Positions 9,052-25,943 of a stretch of DNA of 64,000 nt are shown here, piece by piece. Each line of letters starts with the position of its first letter. The first letter of the stretch is position 1. The notes under the pieces are model-generated. The model was not told the DNA's origin and ran no database searches. It was given only the letters and a program-made list of their open reading frames with translations. The position numbers were made by a program, and so were the translations under genes. Origin of the DNA: Selaginella moellendorffii (Eukaryota > Plantae > Lycopodiophyta); contig NW_003314404.1 of the NCBI RefSeq assembly GCF_000143415.4, forward strand, positions 186,001-250,000, in the 5' to 3' direction.

Positions 9052-9687
9052 TCACAAGCTCTCACCCGACGAGGCATCCTTGAGATCTGCCAGGAAGATA
9101 TCCGTGAGAACAGTGTTCGAAACCAGTGATCTTCTCAGCAGCTCCTGCACCTACAGCAAAAGCACAAACTCAAGCTCATTCGACATCTACGATGGAAAAG
9201 TAAGTACGCGAGCTGGAGTGACGGCAATCTCCACAATGCCAAGGTCGCGGATGTTCTCAAGTTTCATCGTGCGGAGCAGCTCAAGGGTCTTGGTAGTCGA
9301 CGCTGGCGCTGGAAAGATCTCAAGATCATTGGTTACGATGTACTCGACACCTCCCTTCACGAAAGTAGCTTGTGCCGAATCATCCTTCACATAATAACTC
9401 GGTGTTTCTGAATAACGATAGCTGGAATGAGCTATACGATAAGTCGGTGGAATTTGTGGATTCGTGAGCAGCTCCTTGGCCACCACCATGTTGCCGGACT
9501 GGAACTTCTCGACGCTGGAGTAGACATTTGCGATGGCTCCCAGATTGCTGGACCCCGTGAGCTTCAGCATCCGGCCGATTGGCACCAAAAGGAAGCCGAA
9601 GAGATGGTCCACAAACTCCTTGTTAGCTTCTAGGAAGAGAATTGCTTTGGTGGGCTTCTTGTAGAGCAGCCTTACCGGGAGATCCAT
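9052..9687 (-). CDS. DUF674-family protein (copy 1); exon 9687-9208, exon from 9150, possible third exon to 8870
   Basis: LPVRLLYKKPTKAILFLEANKEFVDHLFGFLLVPIG, GAIANVYSSV, FVKGGVEYIVTNDLEI, VQELLRRSLVSNTVLTDIF: typical DUF674 motifs. Confidence 0.8.
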
Positions 9688-10270: not shown

Positions 10271-10762
10271 AAGAGAGAGATGCAAATTCACGAGAAGAAA
10301 GAATGTGGATCAGGGTTTTAAGTAGGAAGAAATATCCTGGATCACCCTGACCTCTTCTAGATCTTATGATCTCATCTATACCAGTCTTTTAGTTTTTGGC
10401 GGTGTTTACTGGTGTTCGGATAAGATAGGAATTTGTCTGCAAGCTCCAAAACCCAACCCGATCAAGCCAAGAAGAAGCAATAATTTCAAGAGCTAAAAGT
10501 AATGTATAATATAGTGGACACGAACGCATGTTGTACCAGAGATCAGGCCAAGTTGTGTTGGAACAAACACAAAATTACTAAAACTTACATGATTCATCCA
10601 CAGAGTGAACAGAAGAACACGGCTAGCCATATTCTTATCAATATTTCTTCTTTTCATGGGTCCAAGTCAAGAGCCGCTCAAACAGTAACAAGAGTCTGTA
10701 CAAAAAACCCCCTGTATATACCGTGTAATTGACTCTACATGTAATCTCATACTTCTCGGCAC

Positions 10763-10769
10763 TATAAAT
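10763..10769 (+). promoter_or_regulatory. TATA box of the Cys/Trp-repeat protein gene
   Basis: cTATAAAT ~120 bp upstream of ATG 10885, followed by a CA/CT-rich leader. Confidence 0.6.
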
Positions 10770-10884
10770 GCCTCCTCGGCCTTCATTGGCATCATCCATC
10801 CCAGAAATCAAAGCTTCTCATAGCAAACTTCTCTCCAAAATCTTTCTCATCTCACTCAACTCAATCAAGAAGAATTCTTCGCTA

Positions 10885-11238
10885 ATGGCAATGGTGGCGA
10901 GCTACTCTTCTCGCGTGGCCTTCATTGGAGTGGTAGTCATGCTCCTCTTAATCGGCGTGGACGTTGGCAATGGCATCGCAAAGGCCCAGGCACAAAGCTG
11001 TCGGTCCGGTTGGCACTGGTCCGGTGGCAGGTGCATCCAATGCCCGACCGGGTGGTACTGGTACAATAGCAGGTGTAACCAGTGCCTGTCCGGGTGGTAC
11101 TGGTACAATGGCAAGTGCAACCAGTGCCTGTCCGGGTGGTACTGGTACAATGGCAAGTGCAACCAGTGCCAGTCCGGTTGGTACTGGTACAGTGGTAGCT
11201 GCCACCAGTGCCCCGGTACTGGCTGCTCCAAGAACTGA
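10885..11238 (+). CDS. small secreted Cys/Trp/Tyr-rich repeat protein (117 aa; signal peptide + 5 x CxxGW[YH]W[YS]xxxCxQ + CPGTGCSKN)
   Basis: Intronless ORF after a TATA box; hydrophobic signal (VAFIGVVVMLLLIGV...IAKA); five in-frame 42-bp repeats; 12 Cys. Confidence 0.85.
   Translation: MAMVASYSSRVAFIGVVVMLLLIGVDVGNGIAKAQAQSCRSGWHWSGGRCIQCPTGWYWYNSRCNQCLSGWYWYNGKCNQCLSGWYWYNGKCNQCQSGWYWYSGSCHQCPGTGCSKN
10999..11208 (+). repeat. 5 x 42-bp coding tandem repeat
   Basis: Units start at 10999, 11041, 11083, 11125, 11167; units 3 and 4 are identical (tgcctgtccgggtggtactggtacaatggcaagtgcaaccag). Confidence 0.95.
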
Positions 11239-11672
11239 GGAAGAAATTTACCATTATTTCACATGGTAAAAAGAGATTATATTGTGTGTGCTGTGTTCTA
11301 CTGGATTTCGTTTTTTTACTGTGTGTCGAAGTAAATAATGCCAAGGTTGTTTGGCAGAGTTTGATATCTTTTGTCTATTTGCTCTTTAAGAAATTTACCT
11401 TGTTTTATCCTTCGCGCTCTAAAGACGTAGACGATATCTTGGTAAATATTTCCAGGGTTTTTCGATGATGCTCGTCGAGGAGCGCCACTGGGAATCCGCA
11501 CGGCGCGGCGCGGCGCGGCGAGCTGGATGCGCCGGATCGAGCGCCAGGGATTGATTCCCGTGAAATGCAGGTCCCGGGAGCTCGATCGGCTAATGCTGCC
11601 GGCAATCCTAGGAGAGGGCGGTGATTTCAAATGCGCTTCGCTCAATCATTCCACTCGAGAATCCTCCCGGCG

Positions 11673-12702
11673 ATGAGCGGACACGATCGCAGATCTGGCG
11701 CCCAGGTGAGTGGAGTGAAAGCGAGTGCTATCTAGCCTGGCGCGTCAAAGTACTCGCTTGTCGTCGTGCTCTCCTGCTGTAGGGTTGTGCGCAGTCCTTG
11801 GCGATGGCGCATCGTCGTAGCTTCCGGGACGCTATCGAAATTCTCAACGGTCTAATCACTAAGAAGCGTGGTGGAGGGGAGCAGTGGTGGATTTGGATCG
11901 TTCGTCAAGCACCCACGATAGCAGCCGATGGGAGAACCATTTCCAGCTCGTTGCTGACCATCTAAAGGTACCATTTTTTCTTCGGTTTTTGGTTTCTTCT
12001 CGAGCTTTTTTTTTTCCTCCTTCAGCTGCTCGGGTTGGAGGAGCCAGTATCGAAATTAAGCGTAATTCATGTGGCTGGAACCAAGGGAAAGGTACTTAGA
12101 ACCAGTTTCTTTCTTTTTTGACGAGCCTTGGTCTGTGACAGGGTTCTACTTGTGCATTTGTGGAGAGAATTTTGCGAGCTTCTGGTTTCCGGACTGCTCT
12201 TTTCACCTCGCCTCATTTGCTAGACATTAGAGAACGATTTAGATTGAACGGGTAAGTGTTGTGGTGGCATTATCAAGTTTACAGTGCTCGTTTAAACCAG
12301 GGAGGAGGTCTCCGAGGAAACTTTTAACAAGTATTTTTGGTGGTGTTGGGATCATCTCCAGGTGGGTTAACCTGGTTTGTTCTTTTTTCTTTGTAATTCA
12401 TAGGCAAATGCAGGCAAATGAGGCTCCCTATGCCACGTCTCTTTCGGTTCCTCACAATTTTAGCATTCAAGATGTTTACGTCGGAGGATGTGAGAAAACT
12501 AGACTATGTTTTTTAATATTGCTTTACGGCTTAACTCGTGACCAACAGGTTGACGTTGCTATCTTGGAAGTCGGTTTAGGAGGTCGCTGTGATGCAACCA
12601 ATGTGGTAAGCAGCTACGCTGCCGATGAAGTTGACTTGTCCTTTTGTTTCTCAGGTTCGAAATCCAGCCATCTGTGGAGTAGCATCACTCGGCTACGACC
12701 AT
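11673..12702 (+). pseudogene. 5' half of folylpolyglutamate synthase (FPGS/FolC), frameshifted and truncated
   Basis: Spliced exons give VIHVAGTKGK|[67 protein letters not shown]; frame broken near 12405-12430; homology stops after GYDH. Confidence 0.8.
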
Positions 12703-13299
12703 ACGTGCGGCATGCCGCGAAGCTAATGACCGGAATGCCGCTGCTATTAAACTAAGGCGGACACTTTTGAAAACGTTTGCCAATGAGTAGAAAATTCCTC
12801 GACTCGGCAAGCCAAGACGGCCACTTTGTGGCTCTGCACACTCTACAATCTGTCTGTGGAACCAACTGAGGAGTATTTGCGGCAATGCGCTCTGATAGAA
12901 CACTACCAACGCGTTTCTTGGGAGACCAGCTAGATTTAAAGAGTGAATCACAGCTTCATTTCCATTTCTTTTCGTTAATCAAGTGGAGATACCCCGGATT
13001 ACCCAGTAGTATGGGTTCTTAACGCGGTCCTCTTCCTGGAAGCTAGCAAGGATTTTGTGGACCATCTCCTCGGCTACTTTTTGGTACCAATCGACCGCAT
13101 GCTCAATGCAGAACCGATGGAATATTCCATCTGCTGCCACGTCAGAATGAACAGCCGAACAGCCGATCATCGTATGTAAGGGAGGAATTGAGGAAGAATA
13201 AAAGATGCCTCAACTAAGAAAATTGTGTGAATGAGCAGCTTCAAGTGCGAAGGGAAGCAAGCACTGTGAACAGCAGGTTTACCTTAGAGCAAATACCTG

Positions 13300-14272: not shown

Positions 14273-15073
14273 TCAAGCAGGCGAAGAAGTCCCTGCCGGG
14301 AGATCAGCCTTGAAGACGTCGTTCAGCACCGTCTTTGACACCAACGATCTTCTCAGTATCTTCACCATCTAGAGGAAAAAAGAAAAGATCAAACGATCCA
14401 TCTCTCAGGAAAAAAAGCTTACCCAATCACGAGTGACCATGATCTCGATGCTGCCCAGATCGCCCATGTTTTCCACCTTATTCTTGACGAGCAGCATGAT
14501 GCTCTTGACGGTGGAGGTCGGGAAGACCTCGAGACCATCAGTGATCATGTACTCCACATTGTCCTTGACGTAGCCGGAGTGTGGCGGCGCCGCTGGATCC
14601 GCCACCACCGCCACTTTGTAGATGTCGGTCACGGGCTCTGTGAATCGGGAGCAGTATCCCCCGCAAGAACACTGCTGATTGATCACGGTGCCAAAGTTGC
14701 GGCACTGGGAGCTCGAGCACTTGTAGACCTTGGGGAGGAAGCTGGGCATCTCGCCGCTAGGCTGGATCGCTAGCATGGTGCCCGGGAAGCCCAGCGGCGC
14801 AGCGGGATTGGTGAGAACCTCCCTGGCCACCAAAAGCTTCTCCTCCAGCTCCAGCTTGTCGATCACGCTTCCATGGAGATTGGCGATCGCGCCCAGCTCG
14901 TTGTCGTGCATGCCAGTGGCGCCGCGGACGAGATTCACGACGCTGCCCATGGGGAGGAGGAGGAGGCTGAGGAGCGCGTCCACGAACTTCTTGTTGGCCT
15001 CGAGGAAGAGCACCGTCCTGGTGGATTTGACGAAGAGGAGGCGCACGGGCAGCGCTGGAGGGGCGGGATTCAT
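14273..15073 (-). CDS. DUF674-family protein (copy 4, intact, 248 aa) with central Cys cluster
   Basis: Exon 15073-14423 (LPVRLLFVKSTRTVLFLEANKKFVDALLSLLLLPMGSVV...YKCSSSQC...CSCGGYC...GYVKDNVEYMITDGLEV) + exon 14368-14273 (MVKILRRSLVSKTVLNDVF...*). Confidence 0.85.
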
Positions 15074-20150: not shown

Positions 20151-22124
20151 GTGAGATCATGGATCGCCGCTCTCAAATCGTCCAGAGATCTACAACAGGT
20201 GAGGGAAATCCATGCGCTCGCGGCCGCCGAGGGCAAGCAGCTAGATTCCTCGAGCGTCTACCTGGGCAACACGCTGGTGGCGGCGTATGGCAGGCTGGGC
20301 AGCACGCTGGAGGCGCGGGCGCTCTTCCAGAGGATGGAATCCCACACGGTGGTGTCGTGGAATTCTCTCATGCTGGGCTATGTGGGAAATGGCGAGTCCT
20401 CCGCGGCCTTGGAGTGCCTGGAATCCATGCGAGCTCGGGGATTTCTTCCGGATGCCAGGACCTTGGTCGTGGCTCTCAAAGCTTGCGGTGGAAATGGATC
20501 CAGGAGAGTTGATGGAGCTATGGGGGGATTGGAGAGAGCCATGGCTCTCCACGCTCTGGCAGTGAGCTCTGGCTATGGCGGGGATATCTACGTGCTCAAC
20601 ACGCTGGTAGCGGTGTATGGAAGGCTGGGAAGCTTGGCAGATGCTAGAAGCGTCTTCGAGGGGATAGAAAACCCGGACGTGGTGTCGTGGAACGCGATGA
20701 TCCAGAGCTACGCTGATAACTTCCGGGAAGAGCAAGCTTTGCAGCTCTTTCAGTGCTGCTCCAATGCGAACTCTCAGACCTTTGTAGCGGCAGTGAAGGC
20801 TTCCTCTCGTCTTCCACAGCGAAGAACACTTGCTCTAGAGACCGGGATGGCTCTTCACGCCCGAGCTCGGGAGAGTGGCTGCGACTCCAACGTTTTCGTT
20901 GGAAGCAGCTTGATCGACATGTACTCGAGCTTCGCGAGTATGGCCGATGCGCACAGGGTGTTCCAGGCGATTCCTCGCAACGACGTCGTCTCGTGGACGT
21001 CGCTGGTGCTCGGGTATGCCGAGAACGGCGAGCCGGAGCTGGCTCTCGAGTTTTTCCAGGACGTGCAACGTAAAGGGGTGGTGCCAAACGCTCAGGCTTT
21101 CGTCGCGGCATTGAAAGCTTGCGCTGCTCTAGCGGCGCGATCCACAGCGAAGCCGGACGAGGCTACTCTCCAAAGGGCTATGGCTCTACACTCTCAAGCT
21201 CTCGCGGGGGGACACTGCTCCAACATCTTCGTCGCCACGTCGCTGGTGGATCTCTACGCCAACTGTGGAAGCATGGCGGATGCCCAGAGAGTTTTCGATG
21301 CGATGGACCAACTCCAGCGCACGTCCTTGGCTCTCTGGAACGCGCTGCTGCTCGGCTACGCTGAGAACGGGGATCCAGAGCTGGTGCTAGAGTTGTTTCC
21401 ACAGATGGAGCTAGAGCTACAGCGAAACCAGCTCGGTCGGCCAAACTCCCGGAGCTTTGCGTGCGCGTTCAAGGCCTGCGGTGCTGCGGTGGCTCTCTCC
21501 ACCGGTAAAGCTTTCCACGCCAGAGTTTGCCGGCTCGGTCTACTCGAGAAGCCCGATTCGGTTCTAGCGACTTGCGTGGTGGATTTCTACGCGAAGTGTG
21601 GCAGCCTCGACGATGCCCAACAAGTTTTCGACTCCCAGCTCTCCGGAAGCACCTCGACCATCACATGGACCGCCCTGATGGCCGGCTACAGCAGGAAAGG
21701 TGACGCTACTCGGGTGCTCGAGCTCTACCGGGAGATGGAGGCCGGAGGGATAGAGCCGAGCTCGGCCACGCTCCTGTCCATCCTCACGGCTTGCAACCAC
21801 GCCGGTAAGCTCGAGGAGGCCAAGCTTCTCTTCGCGGCAATGCGCACCAAGTATGGGATCACTCCGGGGATAGAGCACTACCATTGCGTTATCGATGTTC
21901 TTGGGAGAGCCGATGATGTGCGAGGTGCGCTAGCGATGGCGAGCGCGATGCCTTGCGAGGCGGATGCTGTGACTTGGATGACTTTGCTAGGGGCGTGCTG
22001 GAAACGAAAGGATGCAGCTATCGCGAAGGTAGTGTTTGATGCGCTGCTAAATCGTGATGGAAGTAGCAGCGTGGCTGGAGCTTGCTCGATCATGGCCGGC
22101 ATTTATAGCCAGAAACCATCGTAG
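20151..22124 (+). CDS. PLS-class PPR protein with E-domain (no DYW); first in-frame ATG at 20334
   Basis: Repeated VVSWNxxxxGY/AY, YxxCGSxxDAxxVF motifs; HYHCVIDVLGRA...MPCEADAVTWMTLLGAC E-domain; intronless. Confidence 0.88.
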   Translation: MRSWIAALKSSRDLQQVREIHALAAAEGKQLDSSSVYLGNTLVAAYGRLGSTLEARALFQRMESHTVVSWNSLMLGYVGNGESSAALECLESMRARGFLPDARTLVVALKACGGNGSRRVDGAMGGLERAMALHALAVSSGYGGDIYVLNTLVAVYGRLGSLADARSVFEGIENPDVVSWNAMIQSYADNFREEQALQLFQCCSNANSQTFVAAVKASSRLPQRRTLALETGMALHARARESGCDSNVFVGSSLIDMYSSFASMADAHRVFQAIPRNDVVSWTSLVLGYAENGEPELALEFFQDVQRKGVVPNAQAFVAALKACAALAARSTAKPDEATLQRAMALHSQALAGGHCSNIFVATSLVDLYANCGSMADAQRVFDAMDQLQRTSLALWNALLLGYAENGDPELVLELFPQMELELQRNQLGRPNSRSFACAFKACGAAVALSTGKAFHARVCRLGLLEKPDSVLATCVVDFYAKCGSLDDAQQVFDSQLSGSTSTITWTALMAGYSRKGDATRVLELYREMEAGGIEPSSATLLSILTACNHAGKLEEAKLLFAAMRTKYGITPGIEHYHCVIDVLGRADDVRGALAMASAMPCEADAVTWMTLLGACWKRKDAAIAKVVFDALLNRDGSSSVAGACSIMAGIYSQKPS

Positions 22125-23411: not shown

Positions 23412-25943
23412 CTAGAGGCTCCTCCATAGAGTTCCAAGGACGGGTCTCTCGTCTCCACAGCTCGCCCTCGACCGGGACTCGATCCTTCTCAGAGCTTCCT
23501 CGCTTGTTCTGTGGATCTTACACCCAGCGAGCAGTGACTTCCAAGCTCCAAACTTTAGCCTCGACTCCACCGGCATCGTCTCCACGAGCTCCTCTGCTTC
23601 GTCCAGCCTCCCGGCTCGTCCCAGCAGATCCACCACGCACACGAAGTGTTCTACCACCGGCCGTATCCAGTGGTCCGAGCTCATAGATCCGAACTGGTAG
23701 ATGGATTCCTCCAGCAAACCGGCCCGGCTGCAACCGATGAGAATGCTCACAAAGGTGACGGTCCCGGACGAGCACCCCTCCAAGTTCATCCTCCGGTAAA
23801 GATCGGTAACTTCCGCCATATCTCCGTGCTGCGCATACGCCGCGATCATGACGTTCCACGACACCGGATCCTTGCGCGAGCTCTTGCAGCTCTCGAAAAC
23901 TCTCCTGGCATCGCCCACGAATCCAGCTCCAGCCAGCAACTTCACGAGCGTGGTGTCCACCACCTCGGACTCCAGCCCCGCCGAGACGAACCGCCCGTGC
24001 ACCGCCTTGGCCTGGTCAAGCTCTCCCAGGCTGGAGCACGCCTCGAGGACGCTGCCATACGTTGCTACGCTCGGCTCCACGTCCATCCTGTGAAAGAGCT
24101 CGAGCGCTTCTCGAGGACACCCGGCCTGGACGTAGCCCGAGATCATACTATTCCACGATCCGGAGTCTCTCGCCCCCACCACCTCCTCAAAAACTCTCCT
24201 TGCGTAGTCCAAGCGAGCACACCTTGCGTACATGCGCAACAGCGCGTTCTTCACGACCAAGTTGGCCTGTCCAATGGAGACTGCTCGCTGGTGGACACGT
24301 TTCCCGAGTTCCAAGTCGCAAAGATCCGAGCAGGTTCCAAGGATGCTGGAAAACGTGAAGCTGTCCGCGAGAATGCCTTCCAAGTTCATCCGGTAGTAAA
24401 ACCCGATGGCGGCCCTGCTATGCCCGAGCTGCACGTACGCACCCAGCATGGCGTTCCAAGTCACAATGTCTCTGAGCTTCAAGCTCTCAAAGACCCTGCT
24501 CGAATCGTCGACGCTACCCCACCTCGCGAAAAAGGTGACAAGAGCAGCTCCCACTTCCTCGGAGAGAGAAGACTTCGCAGAAAATGCACGAATGTGACTC
24601 TCGATTTCCTGTACTTCGTCCACTGAAGAGCACGCGCTTAGTGCAGCAGCAAAGATGGATGCGCTCTTCGAAAGCTCGCTATCGTTCTTCTTGGACCACC
24701 ACTCTTGATAAAGCTCCAGCGCTCGAGCTTTATCTCCCTCCTTGGCCATTGCTGCGATCAAACACCCCCAGCACTCGGCATTCTTCGTGGACATGCGCTC
24801 GAAAGTCCTGGTAGCTTGATCGATCCGTCCAAAACCTGCGTACAAGCTCACCAGAGCCGCCTCTAAGTTCTCTCCCTGAGATCCAGCCTCTAAAACTCGT
24901 GCGTGGATCGCCTCGGCATGGTCCAGCGTCGTGCAAGCACTGAGGACAAGCACGAAAGTCGATTCCACCGGACGAACGCCCTCCAGAACCATTCTGTGAA
25001 ACATCTCCATCGCCTCCACCACATGCCCATTCTGGGCATACGCTCCGATCATCGCTGTCCAGCACCAGACGCTAGAGCTCGCGATCCTGTCGAAGAAACC
25101 TCTCGCATTGCCCACGCTGCCACACTTCCCATACATCTTGATGATAGAACACTGCATCACGGCGTCCTGACGATCCATCCCGAGGAACTCCACGCGACTG
25201 TGAATCAGTCTCCCCAGCCGATGATTCCTGGTACTAGAACACGCTCCCAGAATGCTGGAGAAGGTGAAAGCGTCCGGCCCAACGCCCTCCAAGTCCATCC
25301 TGTGGAAGATCTGGATGGCCCTGCCGGGTTGCCCATGCTGGGCATAGCCACTCGCGAGCGCCGTCCACGAGAAAACATCGCGATCGCGGCCGATGGTCTC
25401 GAAAACCATGCCCGCCTCCTCCAGCCTCCCACACTTGGCGTAGAAATCCACCAGCGCGGTCTGGACGATTGGATCGTCAAGGAATTGCGAAGATTTCACC
25501 TCATCGTGGATGGAGATTCCCTGTTCCAGATCCCCGACGCTCGAGCAGGCGCTGAGAACGCTTGCGTAGACGAAGCCATCGGGCCGGATGCCCAGCAGCG
25601 GCATCTCGCGGAAGAGAGCGATGGCATCGGCCGGGCGCGCGGCTCGGAGATAGGCCGAGATCAAAATGCTGCACGAGAACTCGTTCTTGACTGGCAGGGT
25701 GTGGAAGACGCGGCGCGCGAGCTCCAGGTTCCCGCATTTGCTGTACATCTGGACGAGGAGATTCCCCAAGAACAAGTGCCGGCCATAGCCAGCGGCAATC
25801 AAGTGGCGATGGACGCGGCCGCCGTGTGCCAGATCCCTGGCGCTCGCACATCGCCGGATAATCGCGGCGTAGAGCTGGCTGGTGGCTTGGAGCACGCCGC
25901 GTTCGAGATCCACGATCTGGCGCCTCCATAATCCGTCACACAT
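23412..25943 (-). CDS. PLS-class PPR protein (843 aa, partial E-domain, no DYW)
   Basis: Tandem P/L/S motifs; EHFVCVVDLLGRAGRLDEAEELVETMP; intronless. Confidence 0.92.
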   Translation of the reverse strand: MCDGLWRRQIVDLERGVLQATSQLYAAIIRRCASARDLAHGGRVHRHLIAAGYGRHLFLGNLLVQMYSKCGNLELARRVFHTLPVKNEFSCSILISAYLRAARPADAIALFREMPLLGIRPDGFVYASVLSACSSVGDLEQGISIHDEVKSSQFLDDPIVQTALVDFYAKCGRLEEAGMVFETIGRDRDVFSWTALASGYAQHGQPGRAIQIFHRMDLEGVGPDAFTFSSILGACSSTRNHRLGRLIHSRVEFLGMDRQDAVMQCSIIKMYGKCGSVGNARGFFDRIASSSVWCWTAMIGAYAQNGHVVEAMEMFHRMVLEGVRPVESTFVLVLSACTTLDHAEAIHARVLEAGSQGENLEAALVSLYAGFGRIDQATRTFERMSTKNAECWGCLIAAMAKEGDKARALELYQEWWSKKNDSELSKSASIFAAALSACSSVDEVQEIESHIRAFSAKSSLSEEVGAALVTFFARWGSVDDSSRVFESLKLRDIVTWNAMLGAYVQLGHSRAAIGFYYRMNLEGILADSFTFSSILGTCSDLCDLELGKRVHQRAVSIGQANLVVKNALLRMYARCARLDYARRVFEEVVGARDSGSWNSMISGYVQAGCPREALELFHRMDVEPSVATYGSVLEACSSLGELDQAKAVHGRFVSAGLESEVVDTTLVKLLAGAGFVGDARRVFESCKSSRKDPVSWNVMIAAYAQHGDMAEVTDLYRRMNLEGCSSGTVTFVSILIGCSRAGLLEESIYQFGSMSSDHWIRPVVEHFVCVVDLLGRAGRLDEAEELVETMPVESRLKFGAWKSLLAGCKIHRTSEEALRRIESRSRASCGDERPVLGTLWRSL

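Follow-up and report, generated by a model that had tools for sequence, protein, structure and literature searches.

A transcribed, intronless gene of Selaginella moellendorffii encodes a putatively secreted protein of five predicted tryptophan-rich hairpins resembling TNFR, ephrin-receptor-like and furin-like repeats

Introduction

The A1 module of the tumour necrosis factor receptor (TNFR) family is a C-x10-14-C hairpin that carries a Gly and an aromatic residue, and hairpins with a single disulfide, joined through C-x2-C junctions, also occur in furin-like repeats, as seen in the structures of R-spondin. The Ephrin_rec_like, GCC2_GCC3 and ELAPOR1 repeats, including those of thyroglobulin type-2 and SCUBE, are tandem hairpins of ~14-17 residues with the pattern C-x2-C-(P)-x-G-x-aromatic-...-(N)G-x-C. 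In plants, TNFR-like repeats are present in the CRINKLY4/ACR4 receptor kinases. In this work we describe a small gene of the spikemoss Selaginella moellendorffii, located in a 64-kb stretch of contig NW_003314404.1 (positions 186,001 to 250,000 of the forward strand; this whole stretch is hereafter named the window, and all positions refer to it). The gene encodes a signal-peptide-like N-terminus followed by five tryptophan-rich units that are predicted to be hairpins of this kind, and its product is referred to below as the mini-protein. A preliminary description of the same DNA had presented it as a candidate new family of disulfide-rich peptides; the relationship with furin-like, ephrin-receptor-like and TNFR repeats, which was missed at that time, is the main correction introduced here.

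The mini-protein shares the tandem units of the ephrin-receptor-like repeats, each predicted to be a small hairpin, although it differs from them in that its period is strictly 14 residues, without longer modules, and in that W-x-W replaces the single conserved aromatic residue. In addition, it consists of a signal-peptide-like segment, five units and a cap, whereas the ephrin-receptor-like repeats form a domain within a large receptor. The furin-like repeats (PF15913; Fu1-Fu2 of R-spondin, and the cysteine-rich (CR) regions of EGFR and the insulin receptor) provide the best Pfam match, and R-spondin-2 and the CR regions of EGFR, IGF1R and the insulin receptor are found among the sequence and fold matches; unlike these repeats, the mini-protein lacks alternating two-disulfide (C1-C3, C2-C4) modules. 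The A1-type hairpin is also common to the cysteine-rich domains (CRDs) of the TNF receptors, and GITR, HVEM, OPG, RANK, 4-1BB, CD27 and DR6 were present in the list obtained by structural comparison with VIA-align, with Z values of only 2-3. Those domains, unlike the mini-protein, pair A1 with B2 modules and contain six Cys per ~40 residues.

The hevein-type chitin-binding domains offer a functional analogy only. They are small, disulfide-rich and secreted, and their sugar-stacking motif, S-x-W-x-W, has a counterpart in a strand of the mini-protein with the same S-x-W-x-W arrangement, which is to be taken as a lead and not as a test. Chitin_bind_1 was not matched at E<=10, hevein has another arrangement of Cys and a fold unlike the predicted one, and among chitin-binding modules CBM14 alone appeared in the VIA-align list (Z 2.2).

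Results

The gene encodes five abutting units of 14 residues

Translation of the coding sequence, which spans positions 10885-11238 of the forward strand and is also contained in the list of open reading frames (ORFs), yielded a protein of 117 residues (117 codons, plus the stop codon at 11236-11238). A hydrophobic N-terminus is followed by AKAQAQS, five abutting 14-residue units and the sequence CPGTGCSKN, after which the frame ends. The five in-frame 42-bp units (positions 10999-11208, forward strand) were delimited by Tandem Repeats Finder, pattern scans and translation. Each of them fits C-x2-G-W-x-W-x4-C-x-Q, and their sequences are, in order, CRSGWHWSGGRCIQ, CPTGWYWYNSRCNQ, CLSGWYWYNGKCNQ (twice) and CQSGWYWYSGSCHQ. 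The C-terminal cap CPGTGCSKN, encoded at 11209-11235, would form a small C-x4-C loop. The 82 residues from A36 onwards comprise 12 Cys, 10 Trp, 8 Tyr, 12 Gly, 3 Arg, 3 Lys and 2 His, with no Asp or Glu, and have an isoelectric point of 8.8 and a mass of ~9.6 kDa. Thus, the features that had been listed in the preliminary description (five 14-residue units, the CPGTGC cap and the numbers of Cys and Trp) were all present on translation.

At positions 11004-11212, Tandem Repeats Finder reported a 42-bp period present in 5.0 copies, with 86% matches and no indels. A degenerate DNA pattern of the unit gave five matches in the window, all of them inside this array, when 0.03 were expected by chance, and a six-frame regular-expression scan of the window found no further copies of the unit; the mini-gene is solitary within the window. 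Units 3 (11083-11124) and 4 (11125-11166) are identical at 42 of 42 nucleotides, in agreement with the recent repeat duplication that had been proposed.

Cys1, Gly4, Trp5, Trp7, Cys12 and Gln14 are invariant across the five units, and the codons for Cys1, Gly4, Cys12 and Gln14 vary synonymously from one unit to another. Single-base variants were also observed in the RNA reads and contigs at positions 10939, 10963, 10995, 11030 and 11047. They correspond to M19V, V27I, a silent change at Q37, R49K and T55A, and are therefore conservative or placed at variable positions; in one contig (X1), 6 of 328 bases differ from the window. These variants may come from a second haplotype, from another accession or from a near-identical paralogue. 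Because six positions of the unit stay fixed while the Cys, Gly and Gln codons shift synonymously, and because the variants are conservative or lie at variable positions, the pattern of substitution among units looks like the result of selection on the protein.

The gene is transcribed and unspliced

RNA evidence was collected by comparing runs over positions 10300-11799, where X12 and X13, from the same study, are the true raw RNA-seq samples. In X13, whose figures were obtained from ~12% of the reads of that run, positions 10800-11299 were covered at a depth of 2-5, with the first coverage in the 10800-10849 bin, and no reads fell within 10300-10799 or 11300-11449. Transcript contigs from two further studies were restricted to the same interval (X1, 10822-11149; X3, 10828-11299). 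According to reads and contigs, the 5' end of the transcript lies between ~10800 and 10822 and its 3' end near 11299, which gives an approximate unspliced transcript of ~0.5 kb on the forward strand (10800-11299). Neither joints nor indels were seen in the reads or contigs over the mini-gene, and therefore the coding sequence is unspliced. All first mates of the X13 reads map to the reverse strand, which indicates RNA from the forward strand provided that the library is of the dUTP type.

No X12 reads were found on the mini-gene, whereas on the next gene, at 11450-11799, the depth of X12 was similar to that of X13. This indicates that expression of the mini-gene is sample-dependent and independent of that of its neighbour. 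In a separate run labelled 'organism B' (X10; 2024, 718 million letters), about half of the sampled 31-mers of positions 10760-11400 were present, which could be due to another accession, another species label or a mixed sample.

A TATAAAT box is found in the sequence at positions 10763-10769 of the forward strand, ~35-60 nt upstream of the first RNA coverage. Taken together with the unspliced coding sequence and its transcription (RNA-seq reads and contigs), this agrees with the TATA-associated, intronless gene that had been described at first. The ORF list starts at an in-frame ATG at 10768, which was rejected, since it falls within the TATA box and precedes the whole region covered by RNA. 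The first ATG within the transcript is that at 10885, no other being present between ~10800 and this position, and a second ATG at 10891 has a better context; the start codon is the ATG at 10885 or that at 10891. A scan for bacterial promoters and terminators, irrelevant to a plant gene, gave nothing above chance.

The N-terminus resembles a signal peptide

The first 34 or 36 residues (10885-10992, forward strand) have, by hydropathy and AxA motifs, the appearance of a signal peptide. An n-region with a single Arg (R10) precedes a hydrophobic core of 15 residues (V11-V25), the Kyte-Doolittle means over 11 residues reaching 3.4 within residues 11-25 and falling below 0 after residue 26. The core is too short for a membrane anchor. 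It is followed by a polar stretch with the AxA motifs A-K-A (32-34) and A-Q-A (34-36). Signal-peptide cleavage obeys the -3/-1 rule, and by this rule the cleavage site would be at AKA or AQA. The mature chain would then begin with Gln, and no N-x-S/T sequon was read from the translation. This heuristic reading agrees with the signal peptide that had been assigned at first, and makes secretion of the protein a reasonable supposition.

The unit is a variant of a known hairpin module

The best Pfam match of the mini-protein was Furin-like_2 (PF15913; E 0.0033, 18.1 bits versus a cut-off of 28). Ephrin_rec_like (PF07699) scored 9.5 bits (cut-off 23.1) and TNFR_ELAPOR1_6th (PF23091) 8.1 bits (cut-off 33.2), and TNFR_c6 (PF00020) was not reported in this search. 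No Pfam match to the families of plant cysteine-rich peptides (defensin, hevein, thionin, LTP, snakin/GASA, RALF and knottin) was obtained even at E<=10, and hence the earlier statement that no standard class of these peptides fits was supported.

The mature part was compared by an exhaustive HMMER search with 1.84 billion representatives. Of the 114 matches with E<=1e-3, 13 also passed E<=1e-10 and one E<=1e-30, the best E-value being 1.5e-40. With the exception of a few translated simple repeats, the matches are long multi-repeat Cys proteins, several of which carry VSP (Giardia), Furin-like_2, Ephrin_rec_like, NCD3G or TNFR_ELAPOR1 domains. Eight matches (P0007, P0045, P0049, P0053, P0064, P0075, P0079 and P0084) were discarded, since they have the appearance of simple DNA repeats in translation; two of them, P0007 and P0075, were not caught by the Cys filter and had to be taken out of the alignment manually. 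This alignment (A1) contains 70 rows, formed by the query and segments of the HMMER matches, and its Cys columns are invariant or nearly so. When the A1 profile was compared with the PDB sequences, ELAPOR1 (2.5e-15), thyroglobulin (1e-3) and EphA4/EphA2 (2e-3) were obtained.

As a control, 100 shuffles of the query in which every Cys was kept in place were compared with the same targets. The shuffled sequences almost never reached the reporting threshold and scored 17 bits at most, versus 36-154 bits for the real sequence. This indicates that the similarity exceeds what Cys spacing and composition produce. The pattern C-x2-C ... G-aromatic ... turn Gly ... C is common to the mini-protein and the recognised members of the Furin-like, Ephrin_rec_like and TNFR types, and the unit can be described as a reduced form, enriched in Trp, of the hairpin module with one disulfide that TNFR, ephrin-receptor-like and furin-like repeats contain. 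Repeats of this cysteine-rich kind are known from surface proteins of animals, protists and bacteria. Consequently, the "new family" of the preliminary description is not supported as a new scaffold, the Pfam, HMMER, profile and structure matches all leading to this known CxxC...G-aromatic...(N)G-x-C module.

The three resemblances that had been suggested earlier found little correspondence. For the choline-binding repeats there was no Pfam match, CbpF had a Foldseek probability of 0.06 with a TM (template modelling) score of 0.14, and the toxin A repeats gave E-values of 3-9 against PDB sequences. C-type lectins gave no Pfam match either, the only PDB chain of this kind being a type II antifreeze protein with an E-value of 4.2 over 14 residues. 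The tryptophan zipper is defined by cross-strand Trp-Trp pairs; strand 1 and the N-G turn of the unit are all that resembles it, strand 2 (K/R/S-C-x-Q) having no Trp and, hence, no such pairs. E-values of at least 0.4 were obtained against PDB sequences for kiwellin, R-spondin-2, a GlcNAc lectin, toxin A and the antifreeze protein. The top rows of that search, corresponding to WDR5 (E ~0.05-0.1), were rejected, since they reflect W-x-x-x-G-K-C strings recurring in WD40 blades and not homology.

The mini-protein itself is absent from the word-indexed protein collection. None of 30 candidates scored in the word-indexed search, where no annotated protein of 64-205 residues resembles it, and a search of the ESM Atlas by features gave no usable match. 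No description of the family was located in the searchable literature, which is weak evidence, as subscription papers were mostly outside that search.

The closest sequences are microbial proteins with the same period

The sequences closest to the mini-protein (up to 47% identity, E 1.5e-40) belong to bacterial and protist proteins with period-14 C-x2-C-P-x-G-x-[HY]-Y-Y-N-x-x-C repeats (P0001, P0008, P0013, P0034, P0062, P0069 and P0098). They have in common with it the 14-residue period, the C-N-[QR]-C junction and the Y-N-x-x-C turn; unlike the mini-protein, they are long (~190 to 1200 residues, with other regions) and rich in Tyr and His instead of Trp, and most of them have no Pfam family.

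One of these proteins, P0001 (L001:3001-5187), consists of 728 residues with ~18 strict 14-residue C-x2-C-P-x-G-x-H/Y-Y-Y-N-x-R-C units and no Pfam family. It is encoded on a 1.83-Mb contig beside tmk (thymidylate kinase), a holB-like gene (DNA polymerase III delta') and tatD in an operon-like order, which indicates that it is bacterial. Another one, P0034, carries Chlamydia PMP (Chlam_PMP) repeats. P0001 and its relatives may constitute a family of bacterial surface proteins, as yet uncurated, whose Cys repeats are of a eukaryote-like type.

Each unit is predicted to be a hairpin, probably closed by its own disulfide

The mini-protein was modelled with AlphaFold2, which gave a mean pLDDT (predicted local distance difference test) of 69 without alignment and of 84.4, with a predicted TM score (pTM) of 0.53, when the 70-row A1 was supplied. 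The layout was the same in both cases, namely ten short strands forming five hairpins, so that each unit is predicted to be a beta-hairpin, as had been supposed. In the model, W-x-W-x makes up the first strand of each hairpin and K/R/S-C-x-Q the second, and they are connected by a two-residue turn (N-G, N-S, S-G or G-G). The cap block has the lowest confidence (pLDDT 53).

This model was compared with known structures by several methods. Foldseek against the PDB returned no match better than E 0.017; the matches included a Chlamydomonas mastigoneme protein and the CRD of the calcium-sensing receptor, together with the CRDs of EphA2 and EphA4, ELAPOR1, R-spondin-2, the CR regions of EGFR and the insulin receptor, thyroglobulin and TNFRs. 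With VIA-align (48,161 chains) the best Z was 4.2, and the list was headed by the CRDs of mGluR and the sweet receptor, ELAPOR1 and EphB2, followed by many TNF receptors. The ESM Atlas, when searched by shape, gave mostly Ephrin_rec_like, NCD3G and TNFR_ELAPOR1 clusters with TM scores of 0.52-0.59. Although weak singly, the structural matches of the predicted model agree on a known stack of small disulfide-bonded hairpins and not on a new fold.

The disulfide arrangement was considered by analogy. The A1 modules of TNFR and the single-disulfide modules of furin-like repeats are built in this way. Two small metagenome proteins of signal-peptide type returned by the search, P0095 (L003:538-984) and P0081, contain C-P-x-G-x-x-W-Y/F-x-G-R-C hairpins with Cys-free linkers of ~14 to ~35 residues between them; P0095 has four isolated C-P-E-G-H-G-W-Y-N-G-R-C units, and the hairpins of P0081 are likewise two-Cys hairpins. 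Since the hairpins of both proteins are isolated in this way, C-x10-C is the only possible pairing in them, and this shows that a hairpin with just two Cys can exist by itself. Because the known modules are so built and the hairpins of P0095 and P0081 are self-contained, one C-x10-C disulfide per hairpin, with C-x2-C as the junction between hairpins, is the most likely scheme for the mini-protein. From the simple geometry of a hairpin with a two-residue turn, the two Trp, the closing Cys and the Gln would lie on one face, and the two Tyr (or His/Ser), Lys/Arg and Asn on the opposite one. The Tyr/Lys face is probably exposed, and that of the Trp is probably packed onto the disulfide and the unit that follows.

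Neighbouring genes

Downstream of the mini-gene lies a separate, more strongly expressed and spliced gene (11450-12755, forward strand), with an intron of 77 nt, the reads ending at 11706 (gtgagt comes next) and resuming at 11784. It encodes I-H-V-A-G-T-K-G-K (12065-12091) and I-L-E-V-G-L-G-G-R-C-D-A-T-N-V-V (in the ORF 12261-12755), which we take to be the P-loop and a signature motif of folylpolyglutamate/dihydrofolate synthases. Nothing was found for this gene when a fragment of the ORF was compared with Pfam, nor when an exon of 22 residues, which is too short, was compared with the PDB. Both genes are flanked by partial DUF674 ORFs on the reverse strand at 9190-9687 and 14408-15073 (profile positions 262-346 and 3-209 of 445, respectively), which have the appearance of fragments from one or two DUF674 genes of plants. 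The mini-gene thus sits between DUF674 fragments and a gene resembling that of folylpolyglutamate synthase. Further away there are long intronless ORFs of the pentatricopeptide-repeat (PPR) type at 20151-22121 (forward strand, 657 residues) and 23415-25943 (reverse strand, 843 residues), which fits a PPR-rich land-plant genome; together, the PPR and DUF674 genes identify the window as DNA of a land plant.

Discussion

The explanation we favour, at somewhat better than even confidence, is that the mini-protein is a functional, secreted stack of hairpins acting as a multivalent extracellular binder of glycans or microbes, of the defence type. The spikemoss gene, functional, intronless and transcribed in a condition-dependent manner, would encode a pre-protein from which removal of the signal peptide would leave an extracellular protein of ~9.5 kDa that is cationic and lacks catalytic features. 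This mature form would be a short rod of five consecutive beta-hairpins (strand 1, G-W-x-W-x; turn, N/S/G-G/S; strand 2, K/R-C-x-Q), each of them closed by its own C-x10-C disulfide, which together with the C-x4-C loop of the cap would make six disulfides. As there is no hydrophobic core, much of the aromatic content would be placed at or near the surface, with W-x-W on one face and Y-x-Y plus Lys/Arg on the other. Outside the cell, such a rod could bind in a multivalent manner to polysaccharides of the wall or of microbes, or to microbial surfaces, as a defence-type cysteine-rich protein. Binding to extracellular polysaccharides or microbial surfaces is the most likely role, although a putative one, and the secretion, the disulfides and the surface exposure are putative as well.

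Several points weigh against this explanation. The RNA depth of the mini-gene is low and was found in one of the two raw-read samples only. Every Pfam score is under its curated cut-off, the structural matches are individually weak (VIA-align Z <= 4.2, Foldseek E >= 0.017, atlas TM 0.52-0.59), and short Cys-rich repeats can converge, so that similarity is no proof of common descent. The assignment of the N-terminus is heuristic, and a laddered pairing of the cysteines (C1-C3, C2-C4) may be the alternative to one disulfide per hairpin.

More tentatively, the gene could represent a class of secreted proteins specific to spikemosses and absent from the protein databases and papers searched, in which a minimal free-standing stack of the TNFR-A1/ephrin type was turned into a W-x-W/Y-x-Y ladder with a putative multivalent lectin-like or antimicrobial role. 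Such a class would have arisen either by de novo expansion of the 42-bp unit, and thus by convergence with the repeats of animals, protists and bacteria, or by transfer from a microbe with period-14 repeats in its surface proteins. We consider this possible, at a level clearly below that of the binding role itself.

One important question is whether the same rod might serve the cell wall without any recognition, as a structural protein that is insolubilised by peroxidase-driven Tyr-Tyr cross-links and stiffens the wall. The Y-x-Y sequence is the isodityrosine cross-link motif of extensins, and the eight Tyr of the mini-protein, arranged in W-Y-W-Y strings, present Y-x-Y on one face of the strand; the basic character of the protein, its secretion-type N-terminus and the lack of catalytic features would also suit this function. 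On the other hand, it contains no Pro/Hyp-rich or Gly-rich blocks, there was no significant Pfam match to extensins or glycine-rich proteins, and its RNA is scarce and sample-dependent, for which reasons a structural wall protein seems unlikely.

A function as an extracellular peptide ligand or modulator of a receptor ectodomain, comparable to R-spondin, which binds by means of its furin-like hairpins, or to the plant cysteine-rich peptides EPF, LURE and SCR, which bind receptor kinases, is also considered improbable. True ligands, such as R-spondin, do exist within the hairpin-stack class, and a small, disulfide-rich protein of secretion type with sample-dependent expression would fit among them, but no candidate receptor or conserved partner was identified, and two identical units suit binding of the avidity type better than a defined epitope.

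It is hardly probable that the mini-gene is a repeat ORF of recent origin that is effectively neutral, being weakly transcribed, without selected function and in the course of decay. The low read depth, with one sample at zero, and the very recent duplication of a unit are what such an ORF would be expected to show, but the frame is intact over 118 codons and the array is free of indels, the key residues stay the same despite synonymous codon change, the allelic variants are conservative, and both the TATA box and the transcript belong to this gene alone, the neighbour being transcribed separately.

The preliminary description had also offered, as an alternative, a polyprotein processed into single peptides. 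Such a polyprotein, or a precursor of the RiPP (ribosomally synthesised and post-translationally modified peptide) kind, would be cut into single 14-residue disulfide-cyclised peptides, for instance by an asparaginyl endopeptidase after the Asn of C-N-Q-C, or would be modified by enzymes that cross-link Trp/Tyr. Units 2-4 do end in C-N-Q, which places an Asn at three junctions, and multi-core plant precursors with Trp/Tyr cross-links exist, including a burpitide of Selaginella (PMC11253845). The cores of the known burpitides have no Cys, unlike the Cys-rich cores found here, although a distant cyclase of a split pathway might conceivably act on the latter (PMC11253845). This alternative is very unlikely, given that the units abut without spacers or propeptides, that units 1 and 5 have no Asn at the junction (I-Q and H-Q, respectively), that no BURP domain was found in the mini-protein or in the neighbouring ORFs scanned, that the predicted hairpins form an unbroken stack (pLDDT 84), and that the same repeat occurs as a structural domain in the large proteins matched by HMMER.

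The gain from a single locus is modest, consisting of a solitary, intact and transcribed five-unit gene with a freshly duplicated unit. Nevertheless, with five units of equal length it is about the smallest natural context of the TNFR/ephrin-type hairpin, which makes it a tractable model for the folding and stacking of such modules and a possible scaffold for multivalent binders. If the mini-protein is indeed secreted and binds glycans or microbes, it would represent a class of plant cysteine-rich proteins outside the defensins, heveins, thionins, LTPs, snakins and RALFs; such a class would, if real, be confined to an early-diverging lineage of vascular plants and would have been missed by genome annotation.

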